64,000 bases of DNA from Isurus oxyrinchus (lineage: Eukaryota): assembly GCA_026770705.1 (NCBI GenBank), contig JANJGN010000052.1:3162001-3226000 (forward strand). Reading direction: 5' to 3'. Made by a program: the position numbers and the translations under genes. Below are positions 21,101 to 57,594 of the stretch, in pieces; position 1 is the stretch's first letter; every line of letters starts with the position of its first letter. Under the pieces are notes generated by a model. It was not told the DNA's origin. It ran no database searches and worked only from the letters and a program-made list of their open reading frames with translations.

Positions 21101-24100
21101 GATACAGGGCAGGCCATTTTGGACTGAGATAGGGAAACATTTCTTCACTCAGAGGGTGGTCAATCTGTGGAATTCTCCATCACAGAGGCTGTGGAGGCCG
21201 GGTCACTGAGTGTATTCAAGAAAGAAACTGATAAATATTTTGATATTAGGGGCATCAAAGGGTACGGAGAGAAAGCGGGAATAAGGCTTTGAGATAGAGG
21301 GTCAGCCTTGATCATATTGAATGGCGGAGAAGGCTTGAAGGGCTGAATGTCCTAATCCTGCTCCTAGTTTCTATGTACCTAGGTATCTATAGAACTATCT
21401 CTCTCCGTGTTCTATTCTCATGTGACCTTGAGTAACTGATGATAAATACTATCTATTTACATTGTTAATATTAAACTTTTATACTACATCTCCCCCAAAA
21501 TCTTTGACATCAATGAAGACAATATTTATATTATCCTATATTGTCTTTTAAGTTCAACCTTGGCCCCCTCTGCCTTATCAGGTAGGCATAAACAATCCCA
21601 AGGCTCAATACAGGAAGAGCTCTCCCTGGTCAATATCACTAATAAAAAAGGACCTGTTTTGTCTTCAACCCAGTGATGTTTGTGGGATCTTGCTCTGCAC
21701 ATTGTATCCTATTACAGCTAATATAGAATCAAGGGTGTCAGTACTTACCTTGTACAGTTAGTACAAGGGTCCGCTCCGATGAAACAGATGGATATCTCAC
21801 TCTGCAGCTGAGAGTGTGTCCGTGGTGTTTGAGTGATGGGATCAGGGTCAGAACAGAAGTATAGGTCAGAGTGACACCATGCTGAGTTACAGTGTTTGAC
21901 ACTGATCCAGGTACGTCAGTGGGAGTGTCCCAGGTTAAGACAGGTGCTGCTGTTCCATTGCACGTTGTGTTGAAGGTGCAGCTTACATCCACACGCTTTC
22001 CTGCAATAATTTCAGCAGGGAATATCGTGGGTTTATCTGTGAAATCTAACACACAGAGAATGGATCCTTTTAGAGAAATATAACGTGAAGCATCAGTTCA
22101 AATAGAAATCACAGTCCCACAAGAGAAAGCACTTTTACAAGGATGATATCAGAACTGAGAGATTACAATGATCAGGAGAGAATTTCCTATTTTCAGACTT
22201 AGTGGAGTTTCTGTCACTCAGATGAATTCACTTCCACTTTGAGACAATTGAATTGACAATCCCGGGTGAGGGTGGGGGATCAGCTCACAGTTCCTGACAC
22301 ACTGGCTTGTTACTTTCTCCGAAATCTGCCAGATTTAAATTCTATCCAGTTCCCAGCAGGAGAGAATCCATTTGAACCAATCACTGAACCGGCATTTAAA
22401 GCAGACGATCAGGTTATTGATCACATTGCTGTTTCTGGGAGCTTCCTGTGCACAAATTGGCTGCTGTGTTTCCCAGATTACAACAAGGGCTACATTTCAA
22501 GAATTATTTCAATGGTTGTGAATCCATTTGCGACGTCCAGAGGTGGTGAAAGGTGCTATAGAAATGCAAATCTTTCTTTTGTTGATATGTAAAAGTTTTA
22601 AACAGGATTAGGGAGATTGATGTAAGTGGATAACCTGATAACATTGATGGACACAGTCAATACATTTAATCATTGATATTAAAGTGGTATTAGAGGTTGT
22701 TTTAGGACTGAACTGGAAGCTATTAGCAGGTTATTGAGAATCAGACAGTGTGTTATAATAAGCTGTGTTTTGTGTTAATATGTAAACGTCACAGTTTGTG
22801 TTATTTCCCATTGAGTGTTGGATGTGAATTGTTGAGTAATTATAACACAGCACTTACCAGAAACGTGAAGCTGGGTAACAGGGTAATAGTTATGGCTCGG
22901 ACCATTGTCAAATTCTATTCTGAAAAAATAAGGTCCTTCATCTTCCCGTCTGATGTTGTTTATAATCAGGGAACAGTCGCCATCTTTCAGGTCTCCAGAC
23001 AGCCGGGTCCGATGGTGGAACCGTGGTAACTCGTGACTGTGATCCTTGGAGTGAAAGGCAATGGGAGCCCAGGGAATCTGTTTCTCATTATTAAACCAGA
23101 CTCCACCTCGCGGTTGGTTTTCCAGACACGATGGATAACTGTAATGACATGGAATCTGTACACACGAACCTTCCTGCGCTGTCACCTCTCGTGGACTGTC
23201 ACCTTTCCACTCTTGTGAGGGTTTATCTGGGGAGAGAAATCTCAATATTTAACTCTGAATGGTTTGTGGATCCACTAGACTCAAAATTTACAGATGAGGC
23301 TGAATTGGGGGGATGGTCAATACTGAGGAGAATGGCAACAAATTATTTTGGCAGGAAGAATAGAAAAACAGGATATTATTTAAATGGAGACAGGCTGCAG
23401 AATGCAGTACAGAGGGATCTGGGTGTCCTTGTACATGAATCACAGAAAGTCAGCATTCAGGATCACCACGGAATGAGGAAGGCAAGTGGAATGTTGGCCT
23501 TTATTGCAAAGGGATGGAGTCTAAAAGGAGGGAAGTCTTGCAACAGCTGCACAGGGTGAGATTGTATCAGGAGCAGTGTGTACAGTTCTGGTCTCCTTAC
23601 TTATGGAGGGATAGAGTTGCATTGAAGGCAGTTCAGAGAAGCTTCACTGGGCTGATACCTGGGATTAAAGGGTTTGTCCTGTGAGGAAATGTTGAGCAGG
23701 TTGGGCCTGTATCCATTGGAGTTTAGAAGAATGAGGGGTGACCTTATTGAAACATATCCGATTCCGAGAATGCTTGACAGGGTGGATACTGGGAGGATGT
23801 TTCCCCCTCGTGGGGGAATCTAGAACCAGGGAGCACAGTTTCGGAATGAGGGCTCTCCCATTTAAGACTGAGATGAGGAGGAATTTCCTCTCTCAGAGGG
23901 GCGCTAGCCTGTGGAATTCTCTTCCCCAGAGAGCAGTGGAGGCTGGGCCATTGAATAGACTCAAGGCTGAGTGAGGCAGGTTTTTGATCGACAAGGGAGT
24001 CAAGGGTTTGGGGGACAGGCAGGAAAATGGAGTTAAGGCCACAACCAGATCAGTGAGAGCAGGCTCGAGGGGCCGAATGGCCTGCTCCTGTCCCTATTTC

Positions 24101-27100
24101 TTATGTTCCTACATTCTTACCTTCTTAAAATATTAAAGCTGCAGAATAAACATGCAAGTGACTGACCCGCTCGACCCACCTTCCATCAGGGGCTGGAGGA
24201 GGTTACACAGATAGGGAGGTTTGTGGGGGCTGGAGGAGGTAACAGAGATAGGGAGGGCTGTAGATGCTGGAGGAGGTTACGCAGATAGGGAGGGTGGTAG
24301 GACCTGGAGGAGGTTGCAGAGATAGGGAGGGCTGTAGGGATTTGAGGAGTTTATGGAGATGGGGAGCGCGTAGGGACTGGAGGACGCTGCAAGGGCAGAG
24401 AGGGTTTTAGGGGCAGGAGGAGTTTACAGGGATAGGAAGAGTTGTAGGGGCTGGACGGATTGCAGAGGTAGGGAGGGTTGGAAAGGCTGGTGGAGGTTTC
24501 AGAGGTAGGGAAGGTTGCAGGGACTGGAGGATTTACAGAGATGGGGGAGTTTTTGGGGCAGGATGGGGTTACAGAGATAGGGAGGGTTGTAAGGGCAGGA
24601 CGAGGTTACATAGATATGGAGTGTGGCTGGGGCTGAGGGAGGCTACAGAGTTAGGGAGGGTTATAATGGCTGGAGGAGGTTACAGAGATAAAGGAAACTC
24701 TTAGGGACTGGAGGAGGTTACAGAGATAGGGAGGGTTGTAGTGGGCTGGAGGAGGTTACAGAAATATGAAGGGTTGTAAGAGATGGACCAGCTTACAGAG
24801 ATAGGGAGAGGTATTCGGTCTGGAGGAGGTTGCAGAGATAGGGGAGGTTGTTAGGACTGGAGGAGGCTACATATATCGCGAGGGTTATCGGGGCTTGAGG
24901 AGGTTAAAGAGATAGGGAGGGGTGTTGGGTCCGGAGGAGTTTGCAGTGATAGGAATGGTTTTCGGGATTGGAAGAGAGTACTGAGATAGGAGGGTTGTAG
25001 GGACTGGAGGAGTCTCCTGAGATAGGGAGGGTTGTAGGGACTGGAGGAGGCTCCTGAGATAGGGAGGGTTGTAGGGACTGGAGGAGGCTCCTGAGATAGA
25101 GAGGGTTGTAGGGACTGGAGGAGGCTCCTGAGATAGGGAATGTTGCCGTGGATGAAGATAAAGGAGGAGATTACTGTAATAGGGAGGAAAAATATTCAAA
25201 AATTTGGACATTGAGACTTTGCTTGACCAGGAGCCAGTCTCGGTCATCGAGCAGAGCGGGTGATAAGGGAACGGGACTTGGTGTGAGTAAGGACGTGGTC
25301 AGCAGTTTTGGATGGCCTCAAGTTTATGGAGTGTAGAGCATGTGTTGGAACAGTCGAGTCTGGAGGTAATGAAGGCGTGGATGAGGGTTTCAGCAGCAGA
25401 TGAGCTGAGACAGGGTGAAGTCGTACGACGTTATGGAGGTGGAAATAGACGGTGTTAGTGAGGGCGCAGATATGAGGCCGGAAGCTCATCTCAGGATCAA
25501 ATGGGACAACAAAGCTGTGAACAGATTGGCTTCAATCTCAGAGAGCTGCCAGGGAGAGGAATGGAGTTGGTAGCGAGGGAACAGAGTTTGGAGCGGGGAA
25601 TGAAGACAATGGCTTCAGTCTTTCCAATATTTAATTGGAGGGAATTTCTGCCCATCCAGTACTGGATGTCGGATAAGCAGCCTGATAATTTAGCAGCAGT
25701 GGAGGAGTCGAGAGAGGTGGTGGTGAGGTAGAGCTGGGGATCCTCAGTGGACAGGTGAAAGCTAACACTGTTCAGATGATGCTGCAAAGCCATTGCAAGT
25801 GATTCTCTGGCTACGATGAGATGGATAAGAATGGAGCCAGGGGAGAGCAGTCCCACCCAGCTGGACGACAGTGGACAGGTGTTGGAGGAGGATGGTGTGG
25901 TCGAGCGTGTCAAAGGCTGCAGACAGATCGAGAAGGAGGAGGAGGGAAAGTTGACCTTTGTCACAGTCACACAGGATGCCATTTGTGACCTTGATAAGAG
26001 CTGTTTCAGCACAGTGGCTGGGGTGGGAACCTGATTGGAGGGATTCAAACATGGAGTTCCGGGAAAGATGGAACCGGATTCGGGAGATGGAAACACGTTC
26101 AAGGACTTTGGAGGGGAAAGAGAGGCTGGAGATGGGACGGGGGTTTACACGGACAGTGTGAGGGGTGGAAGGTGTAGTGGGGAGGAGACACTTCACTCAG
26201 GGGGGAGGTGTCATCACCCCTCAGCTCGGTTTACGTTACAGCTATGATGTGGATTCAATCACACACAATAAGCTCATGGATCTGGGAGCAGAAATAGACA
26301 AATCATTAAAAATAGTGACGCTGGTTAACACGGCCAAAAAACAAGCAAATCAAACACTATTATTTCCCATTGAGTGTTGAATGTGAATTGTTGAGTAATT
26401 ATAACACAGCACTTACCAGAAACGTGAAGCTGGGTTACAGGGTAATAGTTATGTCTCGGACCATTGTCAAATTCTATCCTGAAAAAATAAGGTCCTGCAT
26501 CTTCCTGTCTGATGTTGTTTATAATCAGGGAACAGTCGCCATCTTTCAGGTCTCCAGACAGCCGGGTCCGATGGTGGAACCGTGGTAACTCGTGACTGTG
26601 ATCCTTGGAGTGAAAGGCAATGGGAGCCCAGGGAATCTCTTTCTCATTATTAAACCAGACTCCACCTCGCGTTTGGTTTTCCAGACACGATGGATAACTG
26701 TAATGACATGGAATCTGTACACACGAACCTTCCTGCGCTGTCACCTCTCGTGGAGTGTCGCCTTTCCACTCTTGTGAGGGTTCAGCTGGGGAGAGAAATA
26801 TCAATATTTAACTCTGGATGGTTTGTGGATCCACTAGACTCAAAATTTACTGATGAGGCTGAATTGGGGGGATGGTCAATACTGAGGAGAATGGCAACAA
26901 ATTATTTTGGCAGGAAGAATAGAAAAACAGGATATTATTTAAATGGAGACAGGATGCAGAATGCAGTACAGAGGGATCTGGGTGTCCTTGTACATGAATC
27001 ACAGAAAGTCAGCATTCAGGAACACCACGGAATGAGGAAGGCAAGTGGAATGTTGGCCTTTATTGCAAAGGGATGGAGTATAAAAGGAGGGAAGTCTTGC

Positions 27101-30100
27101 AACAGCTGCACAGGGTGAGATTGTATCAGGAGCAGTGTGTACAGTTCTGGTCTCCTTACTTATGGAGGGATAGAGTTGCATTGAACGCAGTCCAGAGGAG
27201 GTTCACTGGGCTGATTCCTGGGATTAAAGGGTTTGTCCTGTGAGTAAATGTTGAGCAGGTTGGGCCTGTATCCATTGGAGTTTAGAAGAATGAGGGGTGA
27301 CCTTATTGAAACATATCCGATTCCGAGGGGGCTTGACAGGGTGGATACTGGGAGGATGTTTCCCCCTCGTGGGGGAATCTAGAACCAGGGAGCACAGTTT
27401 CGGAATGAGGGCTCTCCCATTTAAGACTGAGATGAGGAGGAATTTCCTCTCTCAGAGGGGCGCTAGCCTGTGGAATTCTCTTCCCCAGAGAGCAGTGGAG
27501 GCTGGGCCATTGAATAGACTCAAGGCTGAGTGAGGCAGGTTTTTGATCGACAAGGGAGTCAAGGGTTTGGGGGACAGGCAGGAAAATGGAGTTAAGGCTA
27601 CAACCAGATCAGTGAGGGGCCGAATGGCCTGCTCCTGTCCCTATTTCTTATGTTCCTACATTCTTACCATCTTAAAATATTAAAGCTGCAGAATAAACAT
27701 GCAAATGACTGACCCGCTCGACCCACCTTCCATCAGGGGCTGGAGGAGGTTACACAGATAGGGAGGTTTGTGGGGGCTGGAGGAGGTAACAGAGATAGGG
27801 AGGGCTGTAGATGCTGGAGGAGGTTACGCAGATAGGGAGGGTGGTAGGACCTGGAGGAGGTTGCAGAGATAGGGAGGGCTGTAGGGACTTGAGGAGTTTA
27901 TGGAGATGGGGATCGTGTAGGGACTGGAGGAGGCTGCAAGAGCAGAGAGGGTTTTAGGGGCAGGAGGAGTTTACAGGGATAGGAAGAGTTGTAGGGGCTG
28001 GACGGATTGCAGAGGTAGGGAGGGTTGGAAAGGCTGGTGGAGGTTTCAGAGGTAGGGAAGGTTGCAGGGACTGGAGGAGTTTACAGAGATGGGGGAGTTT
28101 TTGGGGCAGGATGGGGTTACAGAGATAGGGAGGGTTGTAGGGGCAGGACGAGGTTACATAGATATGGAGTGTGGCTGGGGCTGAGGGAGGCTACAGATAG
28201 GGAGGGTTATAATGGCTGGAGGAGGTTACAGAGATAATGGAAGCTTTTAAGGACTGGAGGAGGTTACAGAGATAGGGAGGGTTGTAGTGGGCTGGATGAG
28301 GTTACAGAAATATGAAGGGTTGTAAGAGATGGAGCAGCTTACAGAGATAGGGAGAGGTATTCGGTCTGGAGGAGGTTGCAGAGATAGGGGAGGTTGTTAG
28401 GACTCAAGGAGGCTACAAATATCGCGAGGGTTATCGGGGCTTGAGGAGGTTAAAGAGATAGGGAGGGGTGTTGGGTCCGGAGGAGTTTGCAGTGATAGGA
28501 ATGGTTTTCGGGATTGGAAGAAGGTACTGAGATAGGAGGGTTGTAGAGACTGGAGGAGTCTCCTGAGATAGGGAAGGTTGTAGGGACTGGAGGAGGCTCC
28601 TGAGATAGGGAGGGTTGTAGGGACTGGAGGAGGCTCCTGAGATAGGGAGGGTTGTAGGGACTGGAAGAGGCTCCTGAGATAGGGAGGGTTGTAGGGACAG
28701 GAGGAGACTCCTGAGATAGGGAGGGTTGTAGGGACTGGAGGAGGCTCCTGAGATAGGGAGGGTTGTAGGGACAGGAGGAGACTCCTGAGATAGGGAATGT
28801 TGCCGTGGATGAAGGAAGAGGAGGAGATTACTGTAATAGGGAGGAAAAATATTCAAAAATTGTGACATTGAGACTTTGCTTGACCAGGAACCAGTCTCGG
28901 GACTTGGTGTGAGTAAGGACGTGGTCAGCAGTTTTGGATGGCCTCAAGTTTATGGAGTGTAGAGCGTGTGTTGGAACAGTCGAGTCTGGAGGTAATGAAG
29001 GCGTGGATGAGGGTTTCAGCAGCAGATGAGCTGAGACAGGGTGACGTCGTACAATGTTACGGAGGTGGAAATAGACGGTGTTAGTGAGGGCGCAGATATG
29101 AGGCCGGAAGCTCATCTCAGGATCAAATGGGACAACAAAGCTGTGAACAGATTGGCTTCAATCTCAGAGAGCTGCCAGGGAGAGGAATGGAGTTGGTAGC
29201 GAGGGAACAGAGTTTGGAGCGGGGAATGAAGACAATGGCTTCAGTCTTTCCAATATTTAATTGGAGGGAATTTCTGCCCATCCAGTACTGGATGTCGGAT
29301 AAGCAGCCTGATAATTTAGCAGCAGTGGAGGAGTCGAGAGAGGTGGTGGTGAGGTAGAGCTGGGCATCCTCAGTGGACAGGTGAAAACTAAAACTGTTCA
29401 GATGATGCTGCAAAGCCATTGCAAGTGATTCTCTGGCTACGATGAGATGGATAAGAATGGAGCCAGGGGAGAGCAGTCCCACCCAGCTGGACGACAGTGG
29501 ACAGGTGTTGGAGGAGGATGGTGTGGTCGAGCGTGTCAAAGGCTGCAGACAGATCGAGAAGGACGAGGAGGGAAAGTTGACCTTTGTCACAGTCACACAG
29601 GATGCCATTTGTGACCTTGATAGGAGCTGTTTCAGCACAGTGGCTGGGGTGGGAACCTGATTGGAGGGATTCAAACATGGAGATCCGGGAAAGATGGGAA
29701 CGGATTCGGGAGATGGAAACACGTTCAAGGACTTTGGAGAGGAAAGAGAGGCTGGAGATGGGACGGGGGTTTACACAGACAGTGTAAGGGGTGGAAGGTG
29801 TAGTGGGGAGGAGACACTTCACTCAGGGGGGAGGTGTCATCACCCCTCAGCTCGGTTTACATTACAGCTATGATGTGGATTCAATCACACACAATAAGCT
29901 CATGGATCTGGGAGCAGAAATAGACAAATCATTAAAAATAGTGACGCTGGTTAACATGGCCAAAAAACAAGCAAATCAAACACTATTATTTCCCATTGAG
30001 TGTTGGATGTGAATTGTTGAGTAATTATAACACAGCACTTACCAGAAACCTGAAGCTGGGTTACAGGGTAATAGTTATGGCTCGGACGATTGCCAAATTT

Positions 30101-33100
30101 TATCGTGAAAAAATAAGGTCCTGCATCTTCCCGTCTGATGTTGTTTATAATCAGGGAACAGTCGCCATCTTTCAGGTCTCCAGACAGCCGGGTCCGATGG
30201 CGGAACCGTGGTAACTCGTGACTGTGATCCTTGGAGTGAAAGGCTGTAGACCATTTAGACCATTTGTTCCGTATGTAGCTTCTCATTTTCCAGATTCCGA
30301 CATGTGGTTTCTTTACCAAATCTGATGGATAACTGTAATGACATGGAATCTGTACACACGAACCTTTCTGCGCTGTCACCTCTCGTGGAGTGTCACCTTT
30401 CCACTCTTGTGACAATCCAACTGGGGAGAGAAATATCAATATTTAATCTGGATGTTTTGTTGATCCACTAGACTCGATATCCACCCCCTCCATCACTCGG
30501 GCACAGTGGCTGCAGTGTGGACCATCTACAGGACACACAATGAACTCCACAAGGTATCACACCAGATGGAAGAGAATCCTGGACACAAAAGCGGAAAAGT
30601 TCATTCTACATTGGTTCATGGTCCTCAGGACCCTGTTTGTGCAGAAGCCTGTTCTCCAACAGAACTGAAGTTGGGGACAATGCATTTGGAATTCCACTGT
30701 CCGGGGCATTGGGTTAACTTGCTGATTTTGTTTTGCCTAAATCAAAATAGGCTTGTGAGAAGCCAGAAGATCCTAGGAGACACCACAGGTTGGTGACTCA
30801 TTACTACGGCCATGTGAAGCCATGGTGTTCCATTGACACGGCTGAGCATTGGAGAGACAGGGCGTGGAAGGAAGGCTGAATGCACGTGGCGATCCAGGGG
30901 GCAGGAACATGGGAAGGAGAGTTTGAAATAGTGAAAGTGGACCCTTGTGGAAGGTGTCTGAGTGAATGTGTCATGTTGGAGAAGATTCCAAAGCGAGTTC
31001 TTGGAGAGTCAGTGAGACTGGTTGTCTCACAGTGTAACAAGCGTCTGGGGTCAGATGAGGAGGGAGACTTGGCATTTGTTTCAAGTGGGTTCTGTCAGTT
31101 TCTTTCAGAATGTGGTGTCCCTGACCACAGGTCGTCTATTGGTTTATATCGACTGTGCACTTAGTGTGAACATGAGAATATAAGATAGTTATTGTAACTT
31201 GTGTTCTACTTATGAATCTGCAAAGGTATAGATCTGGGTGAAGGTGTAATGTAATATAGTTTGTCTTTCCTAGTTTAATAAATGTTTTATTCTTTTGTTA
31301 GAAGATCATCAGATGACTCCTGTGACTCTGTTCAGTAGCCGCACTCCACATTCCTAAATAAAAAATAAAAGTTAGGACCTATCAAGCTGAGTTCCACCCT
31401 GGGATCTGACTTGCCCAGTAGTAACATCAGCTGGGATGATAACACCATCCAGTCCAAGTTTCACTTTGGCCTGTGAGCAGAACACAGCTCACACAGTTTG
31501 GCCGCAGGTGTCTCCCAGCTTTCTATCCTTGTATATCTGTTCTCATGTCCCTGTTCTAAATAACTCAACCCACAATGTATTTACCCAATTCCGTATCAGT
31601 GGCTGGTGCCTTTATATCATTATAAAAACACAACATGGTGATCAGCGGTGGCCAAACATTCTGGCAGCAAGATTCAGTACAGGTATGACATGGTGAACAG
31701 CCTTAGATCGAACTACATGGCATGAGACGACCCTCGACGCTTTGGTCAGACCACAACAGAGACACAGCATCAGAGAGGGTTGAAATCGCAGTGTACTGAC
31801 TGCTCAGGAAACCTTTGAAGACACAGTGATGGGAAAGAGCTCAAGTAAAGAGCTGGGGAGCAGACGGATCCCTCGTGGTGAGATTACAGCACACGGCCTG
31901 TAGGTCAGTGAGTGGGACAGTGTGTATTGCCAGGACCAGCAGCGGGTTAGCTCAGTCAGGGAAGGCGAGTGACCAGGGTGTGGGCTGGATCGATAGTGAG
32001 CGAGGGAGATTCAAACACACAAAAACCATTATAAAAATCAGCCCAGAGAAGTTAGTGATTATAACGGGCGGCTTTGAGATTGATGAACAGCAAATTGAAT
32101 AAAAAACAAAGACTCCATTACTCCGTGGTGTGTTCCTGCCACAACCCGTCTCCGTGGGCGGAGCTTCAGAAAAGCGCACAAAAGGGGCTAAAGCGACACT
32201 CATCCCGGGTCCTGTAGAAGAAGGAACGTCAAAGGAATATTGTCAGAATGTCCACGAAATTCCCCAGTTTGAACTGGGATGTAGCTGACCGACTATCTGA
32301 ATTCAGAATGTTTAAACAGCGTACAGAGCTCTGGTTTCCTGATTCAGGTGTGACTGAACCAGACGAACCACCCATAAAAATTCACCTCGCGATTGGGAAT
32401 GAAGGTCTACACAGGCTGAACACGTCAGGATTAACAGCAGAAGAGCGAAAGGATCCCCAATAGATATGGACGACATTGGAAGACAGGTTCAGAATCAGGT
32501 GAAACTCCATATTCATCAACTAGAGTTTATGTCATTTCATCAGCCTACACAATCCATAGACCACTTCATCAGCCGATGTAGAGAAAAGGGTACGCACTGT
32601 GATTTCAAACACAGAGCCTGCAGACACAGTTGTTGAGTTGGTGATCGCATCCACTCCCATGGAAGCCTTCCAGAAAGATCTGCTAGATAAGACCAAAACC
32701 TATAGCATTGAAGAGTTACTCTAGGATGGACATAAATACGAAGTGATCCTCGCAGGTCAACGAAGCTTATAGGTCCTCAGTACAACATCAATTGTTGGCA
32801 CACTCACTAGAACATCCAAACCTAGTGAGTCGTGTGGAAGGTGTGGCCTTCTGCGGACACCAAGGAAATGCCCAGCTTTCCACCAATCCATCAAGGCTTG
32901 TGGCAGAAAGGGCCATTGACAGCGGCAGGGCACTAGAGCAAAGGCTGATGCAGCTACAAAGAGCCGTGCGCTGATCCAAACAAACCCTGCACAACGGGGA
33001 ACCTTCAAGCAATAAGAATGACCATCCGCTATCCCATCAGGAACATATACATGTGGTGACTGACAAACCAGGAAATGGCGATGATGTACACGACGAGACT

Positions 33101-37679: not shown

Positions 37680-38280
37680 TCATAAATCGAGGGATTGAGA
37701 ACAAACACAGGGAGGTTATGCTGAACATTTATAAAGCTCTGGTTAGGTCACAACTAGAGTATTGTGTCCAGTTCTGGTCTCCTCACTTTGGGAAGGAAGT
37801 GAGGGTCCTTGAGAGGATGGGGAGGAGATTGAGCAGAATGGGTCCAGGGATGAGGGATTTTAGCTACAAGGTTGGGTTGGAGAAGCTGGGGTTGTTCTCC
37901 TTGGAGCAAAGGAGATTGAGGGGGGATCTGATCGAGGTGTAAGAGATGATGATGGGTTTAGATAAGGCAGACAAAGAGAAGCTGTTGCCATTAGCTGATG
38001 GTACAAGGACTGGGGGACACAGATTGAAGGTTTTGGGCAGAGGGGGGATGTGAGGAGGAACTTTTTTACACAGTGAGTGGTAATGAGCTGGAACTCGCTG
38101 CCTACGAGGATGGTGGAAGTGGAGACGATGAACGATTTCAAAAGGAAATTGGATGGACACTTGAGGGGAAATAAACTTGCAGAGATACGGGGATAGAGAG
38201 GGGGAAATGGGACTGACTGGATTGCTTTACAGAGAGGCAGCATGGACTCAATGGGCTGAATGGGCTCCCACTGTGCTGGA
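37680..38280 (+). mobile_element. CR1 LINE 3' fragment
   Basis: YKALVRSQLEYCVQFWSP..LGLFSLEQRRLRGDLIEV. Confidence 0.85.
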
Positions 38281-38399
38281 ATGCCTCTCTGATACGAAGG
38301 TGATTCTAACCAGGACACTGACCAGTTTCATTACAACTTAACCCAACATCACACGTTATTTGTCCGCACTGACTGACCAGATTGTTGCTGTACAAAGCT

Positions 38400-38539
38400 T
38401 CAAACAGTCTGTCGACTTCCTTTCATTGTTTGTCTCTCCCAGACACAGACTCCAGCGATAGTGATAACCACAGCCACAAGGAATATCACAGCTTGTATTC
38501 CCAGGATCAGGATCACGTGCAGAATCTCTCCTCCACTGT
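38400..38539 (-). CDS. Gene C TM plus short cytoplasmic tail, terminal exon
   Basis: ttctctag acceptor phase 1; YSGGEILHVILILGIQAVIFLVAVVITIAGVCVWERQTMKGSRQTV*; this frame is not in the ORF track. Confidence 0.8.
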
Positions 38540-41500
38540 CTAGAGAACACACAGAAAGAAATCATCACTGACTCTCCGCTTTCAATCTCTCACTCTGGCT
38601 GAACAATCAAGCTTCATATCACTGCAACATTTGCTGTAATATTGACCCATCCACTGGGATTCAATGTGGAATGAATGTTTTCATTGTAAACACTCTAAGA
38701 GTGGACAATCGGAACTTTCCCCTTAGCGTGGAACATTGGTGAGAATGGATCATTGTGCTGTTGGACTCCCTGTCCAATGTTTCTCTCCATCGCTGTGTAC
38801 AGGATTGTGCTGTAGAAAATTCTGGAAACGTTTAGTGCAGGGTGGAAATCCATCTCGGACGTGTGTGCGAATCGGGCAGGATCGAGATGGACTCCCCCAC
38901 GGAGTTACACCCCCCGCTTAATAAACAGTTCCAATCTTTACCCAGAGAGAGGGGAGAATGTGGAACTCACTCCCACAGGGAGTGGTTGAGGTGAACAGTA
39001 TCGATGTATTTAAGGGGCAGGAGGGTCGGTAACCAGAGGGACACAGATTGACCAACTGGAGGGGGAGATGAGGAGAATTTGTTTTGACAGAGCGAGTTGT
39101 TGTGATCTGGAAGGTGCTGCCTGAAAGGGCGGTGGAAGCAGATTCAATAGGAACTTTCAAAAGGGAAATTGGATAAACACTTGAAGGAAGAAGATGGGGG
39201 CAAAGTGGAGTGGTGGTTAGTGGATCTGATTGGATAGAACATTGAAAGACCTGGCACAGGCTCAATGGGCTGAATGGCCTCCTCCTGTGCTGTACCATTC
39301 TCTGCTTCCATGATCTCTCCCCCAGTTAGTAACCACTCCAGATCCCTCTTGAAGGCAACAGAGAAACAGCAACCACCACACCCACTGACAGCACATTCCC
39401 GAAGATCCCGACTCTCTGGGAAAAGATGAACTCCCCAACATCCAGCCTATTCCTGCTTCCTGGAGAGTGTAAACCCTTCCCAGAGCGCGGATGAACCTTT
39501 CAATAAACTGTATTATCAAATCTACCATTTGATATATAAGTTAATTTTGATGACCTTACAGCATGTGTAGCAAATTGTGAAGTGAAGTTGGCTGAAAAGC
39601 TGGGAGGTGCAAGGTTAAGCACCACAGTGCCACCACTGGTGGGAGGATGTAAAGACAGTGTGACGTTTACATAGGATGCCCCCATTATAAATAGGGTCAT
39701 TGGACATGATGGCAAAACTGAACACTGGAAAGGTGAGAAAATGAAGTAAGCTTTTCACTAACAGGAAATCCCTTCCTAAACTTCCTTATCGCTCCCTTTC
39801 TCTCAGATACACAAAAAATTTGACACAGGGCATTATAAGGAGGAGTTAGGACAGGCAAGAGTGAGGGATTAGGAAGCTTCTTAAAGGAGGGGAGAGATAC
39901 ACGGAGAGGTGGGGAGTATCTGTTGGAATCTTTGTGCATGTGAGTTTCTGGAATAGACTTTGTAATTTGGATATTCTTCGATAAATATGAATGGGAACAC
40001 AAATCCCAGAATCCAGGAGAACTCTCCAGTGCAGTACTGAGGGAGGTCAGGTAACTCACAGGGGAGTGTGTACTACTGTGTTAGTGTGTGAGTGTGTCTT
40101 TCTGTGTGCTCATGAGTGTGGGATTGTGTGTGTGCATGCACTTTGGGTCTGTACATTTGTGAGTGCTTGTGTGTGTGTGTGGGAGAGCATCTGAGTATAT
40201 GTGTTTGGAGATGAGAGAAATATTAAAGTCTGTGTACACTCACATTCCACAGTGATGGTTATGAACCCCTCCACTGCTCCATGTTCATTCTCTGCCACAC
40301 ACTGATATTCTCCAGTGTCCCTGGATGTAACATGAGGAATCACCAACCACAGCTCATTGTTGGAACTTGTTCTGTTCATTGGGACATTAAGATGTCGCCA
40401 CATCAGGTTAGAAGCTGGGGAGCTCTCGACAGAGCAGATTATCACTGCAGAATTCCACTCAATTATACTGATTGATGAAGCGTTAATCATATCTGGAGAA
40501 GTAATTGAGAGATTCCGTGGAGCGTCTAAAAACAAATACAGATCAGTTAACTTACACTGACTGTGAAGCACTTTGAAAGACACTGAGAATGTGAAAGGTG
40601 TGATGTCAATGTAGGTTCTTTCACCACATAGCCCGTAATCCAGGCAGACACTTCAGTTCAGTATTGAGGGCGTGCTGCACTGTCAGAGGGTCAGTACTGA
40701 GGGAGTGCTGCACTGTCAGAGAGTCAGTACTGAGGGCGTGCTGCACTGTCAGAGGGTCAGTACTGAGGGAGTGCTGCACTGTCAGAGGGTCAGTCCTGAG
40801 GGAGTGCTGCACTGTAGGAGGGACAGTACTGTGGGAGCACTGCACTGTAGGAGGGTTACTGCTGAGATAAAACTGCACAGTCAGAGCGTCAGTTCTGATT
40901 GACCAGTGCAATGTTGGAGGAGCACTACTGAGGGATCATTACACTATTAGAGAGTCAGTAATGAGGGAGTGCTGCACTGTAGAAGGGTCAGTGCTGAGGA
41001 GGCAAACATGCAGTTATGTGTGTACTATAGGCCTCCTGTGATAATGTGGAGTGCCAGGTACCTTTAAGAGAATACAAGTGGATAAACCATGTGACAGTAC
41101 TGACCAATCACTGGACAGTGTGGGCCACTGGTTAACTGTAAGTCTAGAGCTGGAGGTGGCTGTGGGAGCAGGCAAGGATTTAGTGCTCTGCCCTCTGTTA
41201 CAATAAATAATCAGCTTGTTCTAATGTCGGTCTCTCTTGGTTATTGATAGCGAGCATCAGCTAAGAATAACTCAACAGGTCTGGCAGCTTCGGGGGAGAA
41301 GAAAAGAGTTGATGTTTCGAGTCCTCATGACCCTTCGACAGAACTGAGGTCATGAGGACTCGAAACGTCAACACTTTTCTTAGTGCAAGATGGAAATCCA
41401 TCTCGGACGCGTGTGCGAATCGGGCAGGATCGAGATGGACTCCCCCACGGACTTACACCCCCCGCTTAATAAACAGTTCCAATCTTTACCCAGAGAGAGG

Positions 41501-44500
41501 GGAGAATGTGGAACTCGCTCCCACAGGGAGTGGTTGAGGTGAGTAGTAGCAAATTGGGAAGTGAAATTGCTTGAAAATCTGGGAGATGCAAGGGTTAAGT
41601 GCTACCGTGCCACCACTGGTAGGAGAGTGTAACTACAGCGTGATGTTTACATAGGCAATCCCCATGATGAACTGGGACATTGGACATCATGTGCAAAATG
41701 GGCTCTGGAAAGGTGGGAACATGATGTAAGCTTTTCACCAACAGGAATTCCCTTCCTAAACCTCTCCACCTCTCTCTTACTCTCAGATACTCAAACAATA
41801 TTTCACACAGATTCACAGAAGGAGGAGTTGGGACAGATGCCTGGTCAAAGGGTTTGGTTTGAAGAAGATTCTTCAAGGGAGAGAGAGAGTTGGAGAGGCA
41901 ATCAGTATCTGTAAGTATCTCTGTGCATCTGAGTGTCTAATAGAATTTGCAATTTCCATGTTCTTCCAGAAATATGAATGGGAACACAAATCCCAGAATC
42001 TACGTCAACTCTCCGATGCAGCACTGATGGAGGTCAGGTAACCCACGGGGGAGATGTGTTTGAGTGTGTTAGTTTGTGAGTGTGTCATTGTGTGTGCTCA
42101 TACATGTGGGATTGTGTGTCTGCAGGTGTCTATTTAGGTCTGTATATTTGTGTGTGTTTGTGTCATGATTCAATCTGAGAGAGATGTTGAAGTCTGTGTA
42201 CACTCACGTTCCACAGTGATGGTTATGAGCCCATCCACTGGTCCATGTTCATTCTCTGCCACACACTGATAGTCTCCAGTGTCCCCGGATGTAACGTAAG
42301 GAATCACCAACCACAGCTCATTGTTGGAACTTGTTCTGTTCATTGTGATATTCAGATGTCAGGGCAGGACTCAACAGACAGATCGCAGTTTTACCAACAG
42401 AAAGTGAACAACAATTTATACTTGATGGGAAGAGAGTGCTGATTGGTTGGCAAGTGGTCACTGATTGGAGGAGGTGTTGCCATGGAAAATAATGTGTGCG
42501 AGGTGTAAAGTTAAGACAGCTTGTCTCTTCATTCAGCAGTAATCAAATAAAGATCAGTTAATTTCTATCGACTGTGAAGCACTTTGAGAGGAATGAGAAT
42601 GTGGACACTGAGAACAGGCTGCACTGTCAGAGGGTCAGCGCTGAGGGAGTGCTGATGTAGAATGAAGGATATCTCAACTTACATTGCACAGTTAGTACGA
42701 GGGTCTGCTCCGATGAAACAGATGGATATCTCACTCTGCAGCTGAGAGTGTGTCCGTGGTGTTTGAGTGATGGGATCAGGGTCAGAACAGAAGTATAGGT
42801 CAGAGTGACACCATGCTGAGTTACAGTGTTTGAGACTGATCCAGGTACGTCAGTGGGAATGTCCCAGGTTAAGACAGGTGCTGCTGTTCCATTGCACGTT
42901 GTGTTGAAGGTGCAGCTTACATCCACACGCTTTCCTGCAATAATTTCAGCAGGGAATATCGTGGGTTTATCTGTGAAATCTAACAGACAGAGAATGGATC
43001 CTTTTAGAGAAATATAACGTGAAGCATCAGTTCAAATAGAAATCACAGTCCCACAAGAGAAAGCACTTTTACAAGGATGATATCAGAACTGAGAGGTTAC
43101 AACGATCAGGAGAGAATTTCCTGCTTTGAGACTTTGGTGTTTCTGTCTCTCAGCTTAATACACGTTCACTCCGAGACACTTGAACTGATAATAGTGGGTG
43201 AGGGTGGTGGAGCAGACCAGAGTTTGGAGTGCACTACCCCATCAGTCCCTCAGCAATCTGGGCCATTTATTACTTTGCAATTTGTGGGAGATTGCTGTGC
43301 ACAAATTGGCTGCTGTGTTTCCCACTTTACAACAGTAACTACAATTCAGGAATCAGCTCATTGGCTGTGAAGTGATTTGGTCCATGCTGAGATGGTGAAA
43401 TGTGCTATAGAAATGTGAATATTTCTTCTATCGATATGTCAGACTTCGAGACAGGATTAGAGAGATCGGTGCGAGTGGATAACCTGATAACACTGATGGA
43501 CACAGTCAATACATTTAATCATTGATATTAAAGTGAGTATTAGATGTTGCTTTAGGACTGAACTGGAAGCTATCACCAGGTTATTGAGAATCAGACAGTG
43601 TGTTATAATAAGCTGTGTTTTGTGTTAATATGTAAACGGCACAGTTTGTGTTATTTCCCATTGAGTGTTGAATGTGAATTGTTGAGTAATTATAACACAG
43701 CACTTACCAGAAACATGAAGCTGGGTTACAGGATAGTAGCTGTATCTATTTCCGCTGTCAAATTCTATTCTGAAAAAATAAGGTCCTGCATCTCCCCATC
43801 TGATGTTGTTTATAATCAGGGAACAGTCGCCATCTTTCAGGTCTCCAGACAGCCGGGTCCGATGGTGGAAACGTGGTAACTCATGACTGTGATCCTTGGA
43901 GTGAAAGGCTATAGACGATGTTCTCCATTCCTCATTATTAAACCAGACTCCACCTCGCGGTTGGTTTTCCAGACACAATGGATAACTGTAATGACATGGA
44001 ATCTGTACACACGAACCTTTCTGAGCTGTCACCTCTCGTGGAGTGTCACCTTTCCACTCTTGTGAGGGTTCAGCTGGGGAGAGAAATATCAATATTTAAC
44101 TCTGGATGGTTTGTGGATCCACTGAACCCGATATTTACAGATGTGGCTGAATTTGGAGGATGGTCAATACTGAGGAGAATGGCAACAAATTATTTTGGCA
44201 GGAAGAATAGTAAAACAGAATATTATTAAAATGGAGAGAGGCTGCAGAATGCAGTACAGAGGGATCTGGGTGTCCTGGTACATGAATCACAGAAAGTCAG
44301 CATTCAGGAACACCACGGAATGAGGAAGGCAAGTGGAATGTTGGCCTTTATTGCAAAGGGATGGAGTATAAAAGGAGGGAAGTCTTGCAACAGCTGCACA
44401 GGGCGTTGGTGAGATTGTAACAGGATCATTGTGTACAGGCAGTTCAGAGAAACTTCACTGGGCTGATTCCTGGGATTAAAGGGTTTGTCCTGTGAGGAAA

Positions 44501-47500
44501 TGTTGAGCAGGTTGGGCCTGTATCCATTGGAGTTTAGAAGAATGAGTGGTGACCTTATTGAAACATATCCGATTCCGAGGGGGCTTGACAGGGTGGATGC
44601 TGGGAGGATGTTTCCCCCTCGTGGGGGAATCTAGAACCAGGGAGCACAGTTTCGGAATGAGGGCTTTCCCATTTAAGACTGAGATGAGGAGGAATTTCCT
44701 CTCTCAGAGGGGCACTAGCCTGTGGAATTCCCTTCCCCAGAGAGCAGTGGAGACTGGGCCATTGAATAAACTCAAGGCTGAGTGAGGCAGGTTTTTGATC
44801 GACAAGGGAGTCAAGGGTTTGGGGGACAGGCAGGAAAATGGAGTTAAGGCCACAACCAGATCAGCGAGAGCAGGCTCGAGGGGCCGAATGGCCTGCTCCT
44901 GTTCCTATTTCTTATGTTCCTACATTCATACCATCTTAAAATATTAAAGCTGCAGAATAAACATGCAAGTGAATGACCCGCTCGACCCACCTTCCATCTG
45001 GGGGTCCCATGGGGAGGACCCTTCCTGAGCCAGATCCACCAGCCAACATGGTCTAGATCCGTGCACAGGAGACACGGGTTGTGACAGGCCCCGTCTGTCC
45101 AATGGCTGGCTTTCAGCTGCCAAGGCCAGAGTAGTCCTTGCTAAAACTGGCTCAGGACAGGCCAGGACCCCTGTGCAGACCCCCTCCAGCGCTGCAGCCT
45201 CTGTACAAACCCCTCATGCGCTTGTGGAGAGACACAAACAAGGCTGCACATTACCCAGGAGAATCCCCTCTACGGACTAAGGGGCTGACTCATCACCTTA
45301 AACTCAGCAAATGAGGAGGCTCTCGCTCGGTATCGGGGCTTGGCATTCGCTCAATAAAAATAATCAAATGACATTTTGGTCAGAAATCTAAGGAGGTTGT
45401 ACATTCCCTCAAAAATAAGACTCGATCTGGGGTCGAGGGTCAAAGGGCAACAACTTATATTTACACAACAACTTTAACATGACCAATCACCCCAAGGTGC
45501 TACACAGGAGCGTCATAAAACAAAGTATGTCACCCAGACACATGTGGCGATATTAGCGACAGCTGACCAAAAGAGGTCGGTGTTATGGAGAGATAGAGAG
45601 AAAGAGACAAAGAGACAGAGAGAGAGAGAGATAGGGAGAGGATTTGGGTGGGAATTCCAGAGCTTAGGGTCCCAGGCAACAGAAGGCACGGCCGCCAATT
45701 TTGGAGCGATAGCATCTGGTGATGGTCAAGATTCCGGAATTGGAGGAGCGCAGTGATCTCGGGGGGTTGTAGGGGCTGTAGTTTGTACAGAGGCTGTAGT
45801 GAGGCTACAGAGGTAGGAAAGATTGGAGGGGCTGTAGGAGTTTACAGAGCCAGGGAGGGTTGTAGGGGCAGGATGGGGTTACAGAGATAGGGAAGGTTGG
45901 AGGGGCTGGCGGAACTTACAGTGAAAGGAAGGGTTGTTGGGGCAGGCTGGGGTTACAGATATAGGGAAGGTTGTTGGGTCTTGAGGAGCTTTGAGCGAAA
46001 AGGGGATTGTAGGGACTGTTGGACGTTAAAGGATAAGGGAGGCATTAGGGGCATGAGTAGGTTACAGAGACAGAGGGTTTGTAGGGACTGGAGAAATTTA
46101 CAGTGAAAGGGAGGCTTTAGGGGCAAAAGATAGTTACAGAGATAGGGAGGGTGGACGGGAATGGGAAATGTTATGGAGATAGGGGGTTTGTAGGTACAGG
46201 ATTGGGTTACAGAGATAGGGACGTTTGTTGTGGCTGGAGGAAGTTACAGAGATAGAGAATGCTGTAGGTACTGGAGGAGGTTATCAAGATAGGGAGGGAT
46301 GTAGGGACTGGAGGAGGTTATCGAGATAGGGAGGGCTGTAGGGATTGGAGGAGGTTACAGTGAGAAAGAGTGCTATAAGGACTGGGGGAGGTTATAGAGA
46401 TAGGGAGGGCTGTAGGAACTGTAGGAGGTTATAGAGATAGGGAGGGATGTAGGTACTGGAGGAGGTTATAGAGATAGGGAGGGCTGTAAGGACTGGGGGA
46501 GGTTATAGACATAGGGAGGTCTGTAGGGATTGGAGGAGGTTATAGAAATAGGGAGGGATGTAGGTACTGGAGGAGATTATAGAGATAGGGAGGGCTGTAG
46601 GGACTGGAGTTTATAGAGATAGGGAGGGTTGTAGGGACTGGAGGAGGATACATAGATAGAGATTGCTGTAGGGACTGGAAGGGGGTTTAGAGATAGGGTT
46701 TGTTGGAGTGGCTGGAGAATGGTGCAGAGAAAGGGAGGGTTGTTGGAGCTGGAGGAAGGTTCTGAGATAGGGGTGGTTTCTGGTCACTGAAAGAAGTTAC
46801 AGAGATAGGGAGGGTTGTAGGGGCTGGCGGAGGAGGAGGAGGAGATTACAGAGATAGTGAGGAAACAAAGATGAAAATTTGGACATTGAGACTTTGCTTG
46901 ACCAGGAGCCAGTCTCGGTCATCGAGCAGAGCGGGTGATAAGGGAATGGGACTTGGTGTGAGTAAGGACGTGGTCAGCAGTTTTGGATGGCCTCAAGTTT
47001 ATGGAGTGTAGACCGTGTGTTGGAACAGTCGAGTCTGGAGGTAATGAAGGCGTGGATGAGGGTTTCAGCAGCAGATGAGCTGAGACAGGGTGAAGTCGTA
47101 CGATGTTACGGAGGTGGAAATAGACGGTGTTAGTGAGGGCGCAGATATGAGGCCGGAAGCTCATCTCAGGATCAAATGGGACAACAAAGCTGTGAACAGA
47201 TTGGCTTCAATCTCAGAGAGCTGCCAGGGAGAGGAATGGAGTTGGTAGCGAGGGAACAGAGTTTGGAGTGGGGAATGAAGACAATGGCTTCAGTCTTTCC
47301 AATATTTAATTGGAGGGAATTTCTGCCCATCCAGTACTGGATGTCGGATAAGCAGCCTGATAATTTAGCAGCAGTGGAGGAGTCGAGAGAGGTGGTGGTG
47401 AGGTAGAGCTGGGGATCCTCAGTGGACAGGTGAAAACTAATACTGTTCAGATGATGCTGCAAAGCCATTGCAAGTGATTCTCTGGCTACGATGAGATGGA

Positions 47501-50500
47501 TAAGAATGGAGCCAGGGGAGAGCAGTCCCACCCAGCTGGACGACAGTGGAGAGGTGTTGGAGGAGGATGGTGTGGTCGAGCGGGTCAAAGGCTGCAGACA
47601 GATCGAGAAGGACGAGGAGGGAAAGTTGACCTTTGTCACAGTCACACAGGATGCCATTTGTGACCTTGATAAGAGCTGTTTCAGCACAGTGGCTGGGGTG
47701 GGAACCTGATTGGAGGGATTCAAACATGGAGTTCCGGGAAAGATGGGAACGGATTCGGGAGATGGAAACACGTTCAAGGACTTTGGAGGGGAAAGAGAGG
47801 CTGGAGATGGGACAGGGGTTTACACGGACAGTGTGAGGGGTGGAAGGTGTAGTGGGGAGGAGATACTTCACTCAGCGGGGAGGTGTCATCACCCCTCAGC
47901 TCGGTTTACGTTACAGCTATGATGTGGATTCAATCACACACAATAAGCTCATGGATCTGGGAGCAGAAATAGACAAATCATTAAAAATAGTGACGCTGGT
48001 TAACACGGCCAAAAAACAAGCAAATCAAACACTATTATTTCCCATTGAGTGTTGAATGTGAATTGTTGAGTAATTATAACACAGCACTTACCAGAAACGT
48101 GAAGCTGGGTTACAGGGTAATAGTTATGGCTCGGACCATTGCCAAATTTTATCGTGAAAAAATAAGGTCCTGCATCTTCCCGTCTGATGTTGTTTATAAT
48201 CAGGGAACAGTCACCATCTTTCAGGTCTCCAGACAGCCGGGTCTGATGGTGGAACCGTGGTAACTCGTGACTGTGATCCTTGGAGTGAAAGGCTATAGAC
48301 GATGTATGCCATTTGTCCCTTCTCATTTTCCAGATTCCAACACGTGTTTTCTCTAACAAATGTGATGGGTAATTGTAATTACATGGAATCTGTACACACG
48401 AACCTTTCTGTGCCGTCACCTCTCGTGGAGTGTCACCTTTCCACTCTTGTGACAGTCCAACTGGGGAGAGAAATATCAATATTTAACTCTGGATGGTTTG
48501 TAGATCCACTAGACTCGATATCCACCCCCTCCATCACTGGGGCACAGTGGCTGCAGTGTGGACCATCTACAGGACACACATGGAACTCCCCAATGTTTCA
48601 TAACGGATGGAAGAGAATCCTGGACACAGGAGTGGACAAGTTCATTCTACATTGGCTCATGGTCCTCAGGACCCTGTTTGTGCACAAGCCTGCTATCCAA
48701 CAGAACTGAAGTTGGGGAAAATCCATTTGGAATTCCACTGTCCAGGGCATTGTGTTAACTTGTTGAATTTGTTTTAAATCTAACATATAATTTTGGTCTG
48801 TTGCCTTAAATGGAGTGTAACTGGGAGTCAGGTTAATTAGGAATTTTAGGAGTTATTATAGCAGTCATTGTAGTCTTATGTATGTGCTTGAAATCTTTCA
48901 TTTTGATGACAAATATTTTAATTTATTGTTTTAAATCTCTGAAAGTTTGGTGGAGTCATTGCTTCTGAATTCAGTGCACACATCTCAAAATAAATACAAA
49001 TTGCAAAATCATTATGATAGTGTGACCAGGTTTCTCTCAGGGACTTGGTCTGCCTGGCACACCTCACCTGCCAAGTGATAACACTGTTATAATATGCCTT
49101 TCAGGGATAGCAGCATGACATCACTCGAGGGGAAGTGTGTCATGTGATTTTTAGGAACTGGGGTTGGCTTAAGTAAGTTCTATGTGTATTTCTGTGTGTT
49201 AGGCATAAGGTGTATCTTTAAGTTCAAGTTTAGTTTGTATTTCTGTATTTGGGTGTTGAGAAAAGGGGGAGCTTGAGCTAAAAAGAAGCCAGCATTCCAT
49301 TGAGGTTTTATGTCTCTTGCAGGAAGTCAAAACAAATACAAGGTGTAAGAAACTGTGCTGTTGCCTAGCAACAGTGATCCAGAGGGAAGGACCCACAGAG
49401 ACAGAGAAAAACAGAAAAGTACTTTCAGTTCTGTTGAAAGGAGTTGCCAGGAGAAGCAGCAAAGGAGCGGGACAGATAGTCAGTCCCAAAGTAAAGAAGA
49501 AGCCAAAACCATCGAGTGGAACAGGAGAAAGGGCCCAAGAAAACCTTCTAGTCAAATCTGGAAAAGGCCCTGTTAAGTGAAGTTAAGAGTGAGGAGCAGA
49601 AGAAGGCTTCAAGCTTAAAGGGAGAAAGCAGCAGGACACAGGCCTAAAGCAAAATAGGCTTGTGAGAAGCCAGAAGATCCTAGGAGACACCACAGGTTGG
49701 TGACTCATTACTACGGCCATGTGAAGCCATGGTGTTCCATTGACACGGCTGAGCATTGGAGAGACAGGGCGCGGAAGGAAGGCTGAATGCACGTGGCGAT
49801 CCAGGGGGCAGGAACATGGGAAGGAGAGTTTGAAATAGTGAAAGTGGACCCTTGTGGAAGGTGTCTGAGTGAAAGTGTCATGTTGGAGAAGATTCCAAAG
49901 AGAGCACTTGGCTCTCTTTGAGATTGGAAACCCTCATATGGATATCTCAGTTCAGTGTGACTGGTTGGCTCACAGTGTAACAAGCGTCTGGGGTCAGATG
50001 AGGAGGGAGACATAGCATTTGTTTCAAGTGGGTTCTGTCACTTGATTTTAGAATGTGGTGTCCCTGACCACAGGTCGTCTATTGGTTTACATGGACTGTG
50101 TACTTAGTGTGAACATGATAGTATAAGATAGCTATTGTAACTTGCGTGATCTTTATGAATCTGTATATATCTGTAAATGTATAGGTCTGGGTGAAGGAGA
50201 AATGTCATATAGTTTGTCTTTCCTAGTTTAGTAAATGTTTTATTCTTTAGTTAGAAGTTCATCAGATGACTCCTGTGACTCTGTTCAGTAGCTGCACTCC
50301 TCATTCCTAAATAAAAAATAAAAGTTAGGACCTATCAAGCTGAGCTCCACCCTGGGATCTGACTTGCCCAGTAGTAACATCAGCTGGGATGATAACACCA
50401 TCCAGTCCAAGTTTCACTTTGGCCTGTGAGCAGAACACAGCTCACACACTTTGGCTGCAGGTGTCTCCCAGCTTTCTATCCTTGTATATCTGTTCTCATG

Positions 50501-57487: not shown

Positions 57488-57594
57488 GTTAGTACCAAGT
57501 TAGAAAGCAACTCTTTGCCTCACACAGTTAGAAAACTGTTAACCCTTTGCGTGCCAAGAATGTGGCTGAAGGGCCATCGACTGTTCACATGCAA

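Follow-up and report, generated by a model that had tools for sequence, protein, structure and literature searches.

Three genes with Siglec-type V-set exons

The window analysed here is a stretch of 64,000 nucleotides (64 kb) from the shark Isurus oxyrinchus (GCA_026770705.1, contig JANJGN010000052.1, positions 3,162,001 to 3,226,000), and it carries three genes, A, B, and C, that encode Siglec-type V-set domains. All three lie on the minus strand, as does every exon given below in window coordinates. We located six V-set exons by a motif search (YFFTIK and YFFRIE) together with a splice-site search of the window, which was analysed exon by exon, and placed the rest of genes B and C by mapping shark proteins onto it. 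Behind a single leader, gene B has three V exons, gene C two, and gene A one. The outer V-set domain of gene B (V1, 30043-30420) reads YFFTIK and has three cysteines, the C-C′ loop WKMRSYIRNKWSKWS and the G-strand motif SHNY; V2 (26417-26785) reads YFFRIE, with Arg codon AGG, an extra cysteine in YPSC and G-strand RHNY; and V3 (22858-23226), which adjoins the first C2-set domain (C2-1), likewise reads YFFRIE and has the extra cysteine in YPSC. In gene C, V1 (48092-48460) carries YFFTIK, the loop WKMRRDKWHTSS and three cysteines, and V2 (43708-44073) carries YFFRIE, an extra cysteine in YPLC and G-strand RYSY, in which the canonical aromatic residue is kept. The single V-set exon of gene A (683-1048) has YFFRIE, KYSY and three cysteines.

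Each of the six exons is preceded by CTCCCCAG, ends in G/GTAAGT (the slash marking the exon boundary), is free of stop codons and has phase 1-1, with two bases of a split codon at its start and one at its end. We reject the possibility that these are pseudo-exons, as none has lost its reading frame or its splice sites although they have diverged by 6-25%. An earlier note on this DNA had described three intact phase 1-1 V-set exons in gene B and two in gene C behind one signal exon, with YFFTIK in the N-terminal domain and YFFRIE in the inner ones; our exon, splice-site, leader, and motif searches agree with this description (YFFTIK occurs twice and YFFRIE four times in the whole window), and the limits it had set, 22858 and 48460, are exactly the outermost exon boundaries.

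The leader exons, one per gene, were recognised neither by hydrophobicity nor from the conserved 160-nt stretch ahead of V1, and were found by means of homologous proteins. They encode M(I/V)GKSYFLLSLLQ followed by G, in phase 1: the coding part in gene B is MIGKSYFLLSLLQ plus G (34812-34851, phase 1 donor G/GTAAT), that of gene C is MVGKSYFLLSLLQ plus G (54673-54712), and that of gene A lies at 4430-4469, the remainder of gene A falling before the window start. A leader of the gene B type also occurs in shark RefSeq Siglec models. Separate leaders for each V exon, and hence separate genes, are rejected: only three leaders occur in the window, and on its upstream side the duplicated segment extends only about 55 nt beyond the exon. 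Additional copies of the leader region lie at 56256-57486 and 61471-61783; they are 85-96% identical to 3843-5041, have no recognisable MIGKSYF leader, and may be remnants of further gene copies.

All six exons match V-set and Ig_CD22 in Pfam, and their top phmmer matches in the PDB are Siglec-5, Siglec-7, MAG, Siglec-8, Siglec-10, CD33, and sialoadhesin (E-values of 5e-15 to 5e-11), in agreement with one another and with the Siglec assignment already proposed. The Siglec V-set fold has an unusual B-E intrasheet disulfide and an extra N-terminal cysteine, and the corresponding pattern (CxxxxC plus an E-strand cysteine; GSCVQIPC ... GDCSL) is found in all six exons. In the phmmer alignments YFFRIE pairs with the Arg-bearing motif of Siglec-5 (FFRVE), Siglec-7 (FFRME), and MAG (YFRGD), and the position that is Arg or Thr in the window therefore corresponds to the canonical sialic-acid Arg, an equivalence that had been assumed beforehand and that alignment to known Siglecs bears out. 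We take the aligned residues to be R119 of Siglec-5, R124 of Siglec-7, and R118 of MAG.

At this F-strand position B-V1 and C-V1 have Thr (codon ACG, at 30104-30106 in B-V1), and B-V2, B-V3, C-V2, and A-V have Arg. The A-strand Trp (QEW) is present in 6/6 exons, and the G-strand site aligned with the Tyr of Siglec-5 KYSY is Tyr in A-V and C-V2 and His in B-V1, B-V2, B-V3, and C-V1. Thus, with Thr in place of Arg and His in place of the G-strand aromatic residue, B-V1 and C-V1 retain only the Trp among the three classic contacts; all three are present in C-V2, and B-V2 and B-V3 have the Arg but a His on the G strand. Judged by these residues, the inner V domains are predicted to bind sialic acid. 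The outer domain had also been credited with a longer basic and aromatic C-C′ loop, which holds in part: B-V1 is longer than the inner domains (125 versus 122 residues), but C-V1 has the inner length and is only more basic.

Downstream of its V exons gene B continues with the first C2-set exon (21749-22045, DFTDKPTIF...), which contains the acceptor cysteine (SCTFNTTC) for a V-C2 interdomain disulfide, a glycosylated C2-set exon present twice (at ~16930-17211, abutting an N run at 16773-16924, and at ~15708-15989), two further C2-set exons (~13290-13590 and ~12284-12598), a transmembrane (TM) exon (GRDSSKWTVGLLTAGIMLSVFLAGIFIFICVRK, 11161-11259), and two cytoplasmic exons (10333-10458 and 8882-9166) that end in ...DLLYANPQVF...TEYAQIRFKQN, a tail resembling immunoreceptor tyrosine-based inhibitory and switch motifs (ITIM and ITSM). 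Gene C has two C2-set exons (42683-42979 and 40212-40526) and a last exon (38403-38540) that encodes the TM segment and a short tail, DSGGEILHVILILGIQAVIFLVAVVITIAGVCVWERQTMKGSRQTV, followed by a stop codon, with Gln where the great white relative has Arg. The order V, C2, TM and tail of a Siglec receptor is thus found in both genes, with the acceptor cysteine in C2-1, the TM segment and TEYAQI tail in gene B, and the short tail with a polar TM residue in gene C.

Other pieces of such genes are scattered through the window. The second half of a glycosylated-type C2 exon at ~42203-42358, between C2-1 and the full C2 exon of gene C, is probably a dead exon remnant. Another copy of the NxS/T-rich C2 exon (APRNLSI...ITVE) at 63737-64000 runs off the window end, and RefSeq relatives have up to five such exons in a row (P0184). 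Two long tandem arrays lie upstream of gene C: one at 59909-60890, in which a 24-bp unit is repeated 41 times (92% matches) and which is open in several frames, and one at 57593-58355, in which a 43-bp unit is repeated 18 times.

Tandem duplication of the V exon

Comparison of the window with itself shows that B-V1, B-V2, and B-V3 were made by a tandem unit of about 3.6 kb spanning 22801-30475: the segment 22801-25139 is 97.2% identical to 26360-28685, and 25272-26841 is 95.2% identical to 28898-30475. The unit comprises the V exon, a long interspersed nuclear element (LINE) reverse-transcriptase fragment and a 37-bp satellite, and the leader lies outside it; the V exon was thus duplicated in tandem without its leader exon. 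Because the exon is phase 1-1 and its splice signals are unchanged, the copies can be spliced in series. Every V-V intron contains the G-rich satellite (26-29 copies with ~71-75% matches, at 24188-25139, 27735-28796, and 45801-46833), with the LINE fragments beside it (25500-26196, 29126-29822, and 47175-47871), and the satellite may have favoured multiplication of the V exon by unequal crossing-over.

The intron between V1 and V2 of gene C is homologous to the V-V introns of gene B, and B-V1 with its flanks is 95.9% identical to C-V1 with its flanks, which argues that the two-V layout is older than the duplication that separated B from C and that gene B gained its third V later. At the protein level B-V1 and C-V1 are 87% identical, V1 and V2 75-79%, and the shark V copies among themselves 75-94%. 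B-V2 and B-V3 differ far less, with identities of 94% in amino acids, 97.0% in exon nucleotides, and 97.95% in the intron. By these divergences gene B acquired its third V very recently.

Identity between genes B and C is uneven. The 1.1 kb of intron just downstream of V1 (28899-30042 versus 46948-48091) is 98.3% identical, whereas the V1 exon is 93.8% identical, the upstream intron 92.0%, and the remaining matching parts 87-95%. This mosaic suggests gene conversion between the ITIM-type and the short-tailed gene.

Multi-V relatives and the case for stacked domains

To place these genes we ran phmmer against 1.84 billion representative proteins. There were 32 proteins below the threshold of 1e-30, and several of them, all RefSeq models from sharks and rays, have two to four matched V stretches, among them a three-V 'Siglec-8 isoform X3' of S. 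canicula and a four-V 'Siglec-12' of Hypanus sabinus. Examples of such entries are XP_038670873 (S. canicula, three V), XP_059815055 (Hypanus sabinus, four V), and XP_078389734 (Cetorhinus, two V). Two or three V domains are modelled in Cetorhinus, Mustelus, S. torazame, Chiloscyllium, and Carcharodon, and RefSeq holds three-V and four-V Siglec models from Scyliorhinus, Mustelus, Hypanus, and Mobula; in all, independent annotations of at least 10 species of sharks and rays contain multi-V models. The nearest annotated proteins, those of Carcharodon carcharias, are 93-99% identical to the window exons per exon and never 100%. The earlier note had known of no described three-V Siglec, which stands as regards papers, as we found none on shark or ray multi-V Siglecs in the literature searched, but not as regards annotation, where three-V and four-V models exist. 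Siglec-12 is stated to be the sole Siglec with two V-set domains (PMC7876704).

In a domain census of 253 proteins, made with a hidden Markov model built from the six window exons, 130 proteins have one Siglec-type V, 19 have two, 6 have three, and 3 have four. The first V of multi-V proteins has Arg at the canonical position in 26 of 28 cases, and the inner domains have Arg in 25, Lys in 8, and Ser in 2, and in rays it is inner domains that have Lys or Ser; the four-V models of stingray and devil ray (P0002, P0155, and P0163) read R, K, S/R, and K along the chain. The order noted in genes B and C, an outer domain without Arg followed by inner domains with it, is therefore not general, since most first domains keep the residue and the inner domains of rays vary. 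Apart from B-V1 and C-V1, Thr at this position occurs among the 253 proteins only in one single-V protein of a skate (P0249, motif T-V-K-F-G), and the nearest great white outer V reads YFFRIKF, which indicates that loss of the Arg is particular to paralogues B and C and does not characterise the family.

We built a tree from 58 V domains; its support is moderate, and the domain is short. B-V1 and C-V1 group with the first V of the two-V proteins of Carcharodon and Cetorhinus, and B-V2 and B-V3 fall among the inner V domains of sharks from three orders (lamniform, carcharhiniform, and orectolobiform). Labels for position in the chain cluster on this tree (0/500 shuffles). As outer and inner V domains belong to separate first-V and inner-V groups shared with other sharks, the two-V layout is old. 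On this evidence B and C are members of a multi-V Siglec-type subfamily found across sharks and rays.

The cysteines provide a second line of evidence. Four or more are found in 34/38 inner V domains in the census, as against 6/28 first and 15/127 single V domains, and the window follows the same distribution, with 3, 4, and 4 cysteines along gene B, 3 and 4 along gene C, and 3 in gene A. In sharks the extra cysteine is that of YPSC, seven residues after the B-strand cysteine in the B-C loop. The acceptor cysteine of C2-1 lies six residues after its own B-strand cysteine and is aligned with a MAG cysteine; in CD33 the interdomain cysteine is C169 (PMC7426717). We propose that the fourth cysteine of a follower V would accept an interdomain disulfide from the otherwise unpaired first cysteine of the preceding V, as the C2 cysteine does. 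An acceptor in a follower V would make sense only if the V domains sit in one chain, and its location at a site matching the C2 interdomain cysteine argues for their co-inclusion. The extra cysteine of V2 and V4 in rays lies elsewhere, in KDEC of the C-C′ region, which suggests that rays solved the problem of pairing independently.

Structure prediction is consistent with such an arrangement. The two-V protein P0166 of the great white gave a confident AlphaFold2 (AF2) model (pLDDT 82.8, pTM 0.62), in which the V2-C2 part superposes on CD33 V-C2 with Z 20.3 and a root-mean-square deviation of 2.8 Å over 206 residues, and on the V-C2 structures of CD33, Siglec-10, and Siglec-5 with Z 17-20; the inner V and C2 would therefore form the canonical Siglec unit, with V1 as an add-on. 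A complex prediction with B-V1 and B-V2 as separate chains scored 0.04, which is evidence neither way.

The explanation that we consider best, and moderately probable, is that B and C encode neighbouring multi-V Siglec-type receptors with stacked V domains and an Arg-less outer head. Gene B would yield signal peptide, V1, V2, V3, C2 domains, TM segment, and ITIM/ITSM-like tail, and gene C signal peptide, V1, V2, two C2 domains, TM segment, and short tail; in each the last V and the first C2 would form the canonical V-C2 unit that keeps the sialic-acid Arg, and the stacked V domains would be stapled by disulfides. Gnomon models of relatives do join successive V domains.

RNA data bear on the splicing of these exons. 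Logan contigs from four RNA-size runs were mapped to 24480-30479; they are 67-588 nt long and cross-map among many paralogues. In three of the four runs the bins over V exons are 25-50 times deeper than adjacent unique intron. One contig joins the 3′ end of a V2/V3-type exon (loose end 26417) to DFTDKPTIFP, that is, the V-to-C2-1 junction, and another joins the leader to the V of a paralogue. A homologue search with the V1 exon alone found just three RefSeq fragments, all short, and none from a transcript that crosses a junction.

Several observations count against stacked receptors of this kind. Neither the V1-to-V2 (26785-to-30043) nor the V2-to-V3 junction was seen among the 15 RNA-contig joints listed, the contigs being short, and at the V2-diagnostic sites 26478 and 26639 all contigs of all four runs read the letter of V3 or a paralogue. 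Shared descent confounds the association of the fourth cysteine with inner position; supported branches provide only two independent contrasts. The RefSeq models are automatic, and some join past exons, running from signal to C2-1 (P0195) or from V2 to TM (P0003). The ratio of nonsynonymous to synonymous substitution rates (dN/dS) between B-V2 and B-V3 is 0.63 on 10 changes, indistinguishable from neutral drift. Lastly, the TM segment of gene C reads LGIQAVIF, with Gln in place of a charged residue. Taken together, the RNA contigs neither confirm nor refute co-splicing of the V exons, and for the third V they lean slightly against it.

For the third V there is a competing account, which we rate as less likely than not: it may have arisen by recent duplication and be neutral, vary in copy number among individuals, or reflect expansion in the assembly, only the two-V layout being biologically maintained, in which case V2 or V3 would add no function or would be absent from some haplotypes. 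Exons and introns of the V2 and V3 units show the same identity, 97-98%, which together with the dN/dS value does not so far point to constraint on the newest copy, the V3-type letters of the RNA contigs at both diagnostic sites fit such an account, and the best DNA holders contain just 0.43-0.44 of the words sampled from 26300-30500. However, both exons have an open frame and perfect splice sites, no N run lies close to them, and in the tree the inner V was duplicated again independently in the three-V models of Scyliorhinus and Mustelus.

A different account concerns all of the V exons, which might be used as cassettes or in mutually exclusive fashion, so that each receptor would have one V or a varying subset and heads would differ among receptors. 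Any subset would stay in frame because all exons are phase 1-1 with identical splice signals, the exon-skipping relatives P0195 and P0003 exist, and the RNA-contig joints listed include a signal-to-V junction of a paralogue and no V-to-V joint. We nevertheless think it improbable: multi-V models recur independently across the 10 or more species, first-V and inner-V groups stay separate across orders in the tree, and the fourth cysteine of an inner V, typically missing from first and single V domains, would be left unpaired if that domain were used alone after the leader.

The outer domain and the proposed receptor pair

In the stacked receptors that we favour, the outer V would have lost its Arg by a single-base change (AGR to ACG), accompanied by a change of Glu to Lys two residues on. 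Since both the Arg and the G-strand aromatic residue are missing, the outer V most likely no longer binds sialic acid canonically, in analogy to human Siglec-XII, which does not recognise sialic acid because its canonical Arg is lost; great-ape Siglec-5, also without the Arg, cannot recognise sialic acid either (PMC6288428, PMC7876704). The outer V retains a C-C′ loop rich in Trp, Lys, and Arg.

The change could instead have retuned the outer V rather than silenced it, with a sialoglycan or another anionic ligand bound through a shifted basic residue and the loop. The replacement of RIE by TIK, in which Arg to Thr is coupled with Glu to Lys on one face of the strand, would fit this, as would the T-x-K-F-G of the skate protein P0249, the S-I-K-F of stingray V3, and the retained A-strand Trp, and findings on Siglec-6 offer a comparison for a retuned Lys on the T-I-K face. 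We regard this as unlikely, given the failure of the Arg-less human Siglec-XII and great-ape Siglec-5 to recognise sialic acid (PMC6288428, PMC7876704) and the His in place of the G-strand aromatic in V1. A bolder and rather doubtful reading is that the outer V is a new recognition module, stapled through the new acceptor cysteine to a canonical sialic-acid unit, so that one receptor would have two ligands and B and C would share the head; its fast-changing Trp/Lys/Arg C-C′ loop and relocated Lys might then bind a non-canonical target, for example a membrane glycolipid, an anionic glycan such as a sulfated one, or a ligand of microbial or protein nature.

With a TM segment and TEYAQI tail in gene B and a short tail in gene C, the two genes look like a paired-receptor couple sharing an outer head, one with an inhibitory-type tail. 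The charged TM Lys or Arg of adaptor coupling is absent from gene C; the great white relative P0174, which reads LGIRAVIF, has Arg at the site of the gene C Gln. The proximal motif of gene B, LLYANP, does not fit the ITIM consensus. A close parallel is the Siglec-5/Siglec-14 pair, in which, as here, an ITIM-type and a short-tailed gene stand side by side with a shared outer domain (87% identical between B and C, with the 98.3% tract over 1.1 kb). The domain shared by B and C is far less identical than in that pair, however, and the Gln of gene C occupies the position at which coupling to a DAP12-type partner requires Lys or Arg.

Other known systems share some of these features. Like the shark receptors, primate Siglec-12 (human Siglec-XII) has two N-terminal V-set domains before its C2 domains, and in the human protein the outer V lacks the essential Arg (R122C) and does not bind sialic acid, although the tail still signals (PMC7876704, PMC6288428). 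The origins are independent, and the shark genes are not orthologues of primate SIGLEC12: shark V1 and V2 are 75-79% identical to one another, have, in the alignments listed, only about one third of residues in common with Siglec-5 and Siglec-7, and lie in shark-specific intron units with a LINE fragment and a satellite. Moreover, the terminal V of chimpanzee Siglec-12 binds sialic acid, whereas in B and C the terminal V is Arg-less and the inner domains keep the Arg, and the two V domains of Siglec-12 compare with three to four in annotated members of the shark family. The CD33-related Siglecs (Siglec-5, -7, -8, -10, and CD33) are the best matches of solved structure and share the YFFR(I/M/V)E F-strand, the cysteine pattern, a V-C2 superposition at Z of about 20, and, in gene B, a TEYAQI resembling mammalian TEYSE(I/V); they differ in having a single V in mammals, and LLYANP of gene B lies outside the ITIM consensus. 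The shark and ray models named 'Siglec-12/-8/-13-like' in RefSeq belong to the same subfamily, with the same leader, first-V and inner-V types, and extra inner-V cysteine; the outer V of the shark multi-V models keeps the Arg, unlike the Thr of B and C.

In the literature searched, a single V-set head is the rule for Siglecs and Siglec-12 the sole exception (PMC7876704), whereas cartilaginous fishes have a whole subfamily with two to four or more heads, marked by an adaptation of its own, a fourth cysteine in nearly all follower V domains, and by recurrent loss of the canonical Arg. Multi-V models were already present in automatic annotation; what is new here is the restriction of the Arg-to-Thr change to paralogues B and C, the fourth-cysteine rule, and the apparent B/C pairing. 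If the stacked proteins are made, they would be a natural system for avidity or dual specificity gained through exon duplication, and would bear on the persistence of Arg-less 'Roman-numeral' Siglec domains and on the age of paired inhibitory and activating Siglecs, to which this locus contributes a clean gene pair with a common Arg-less outer head.

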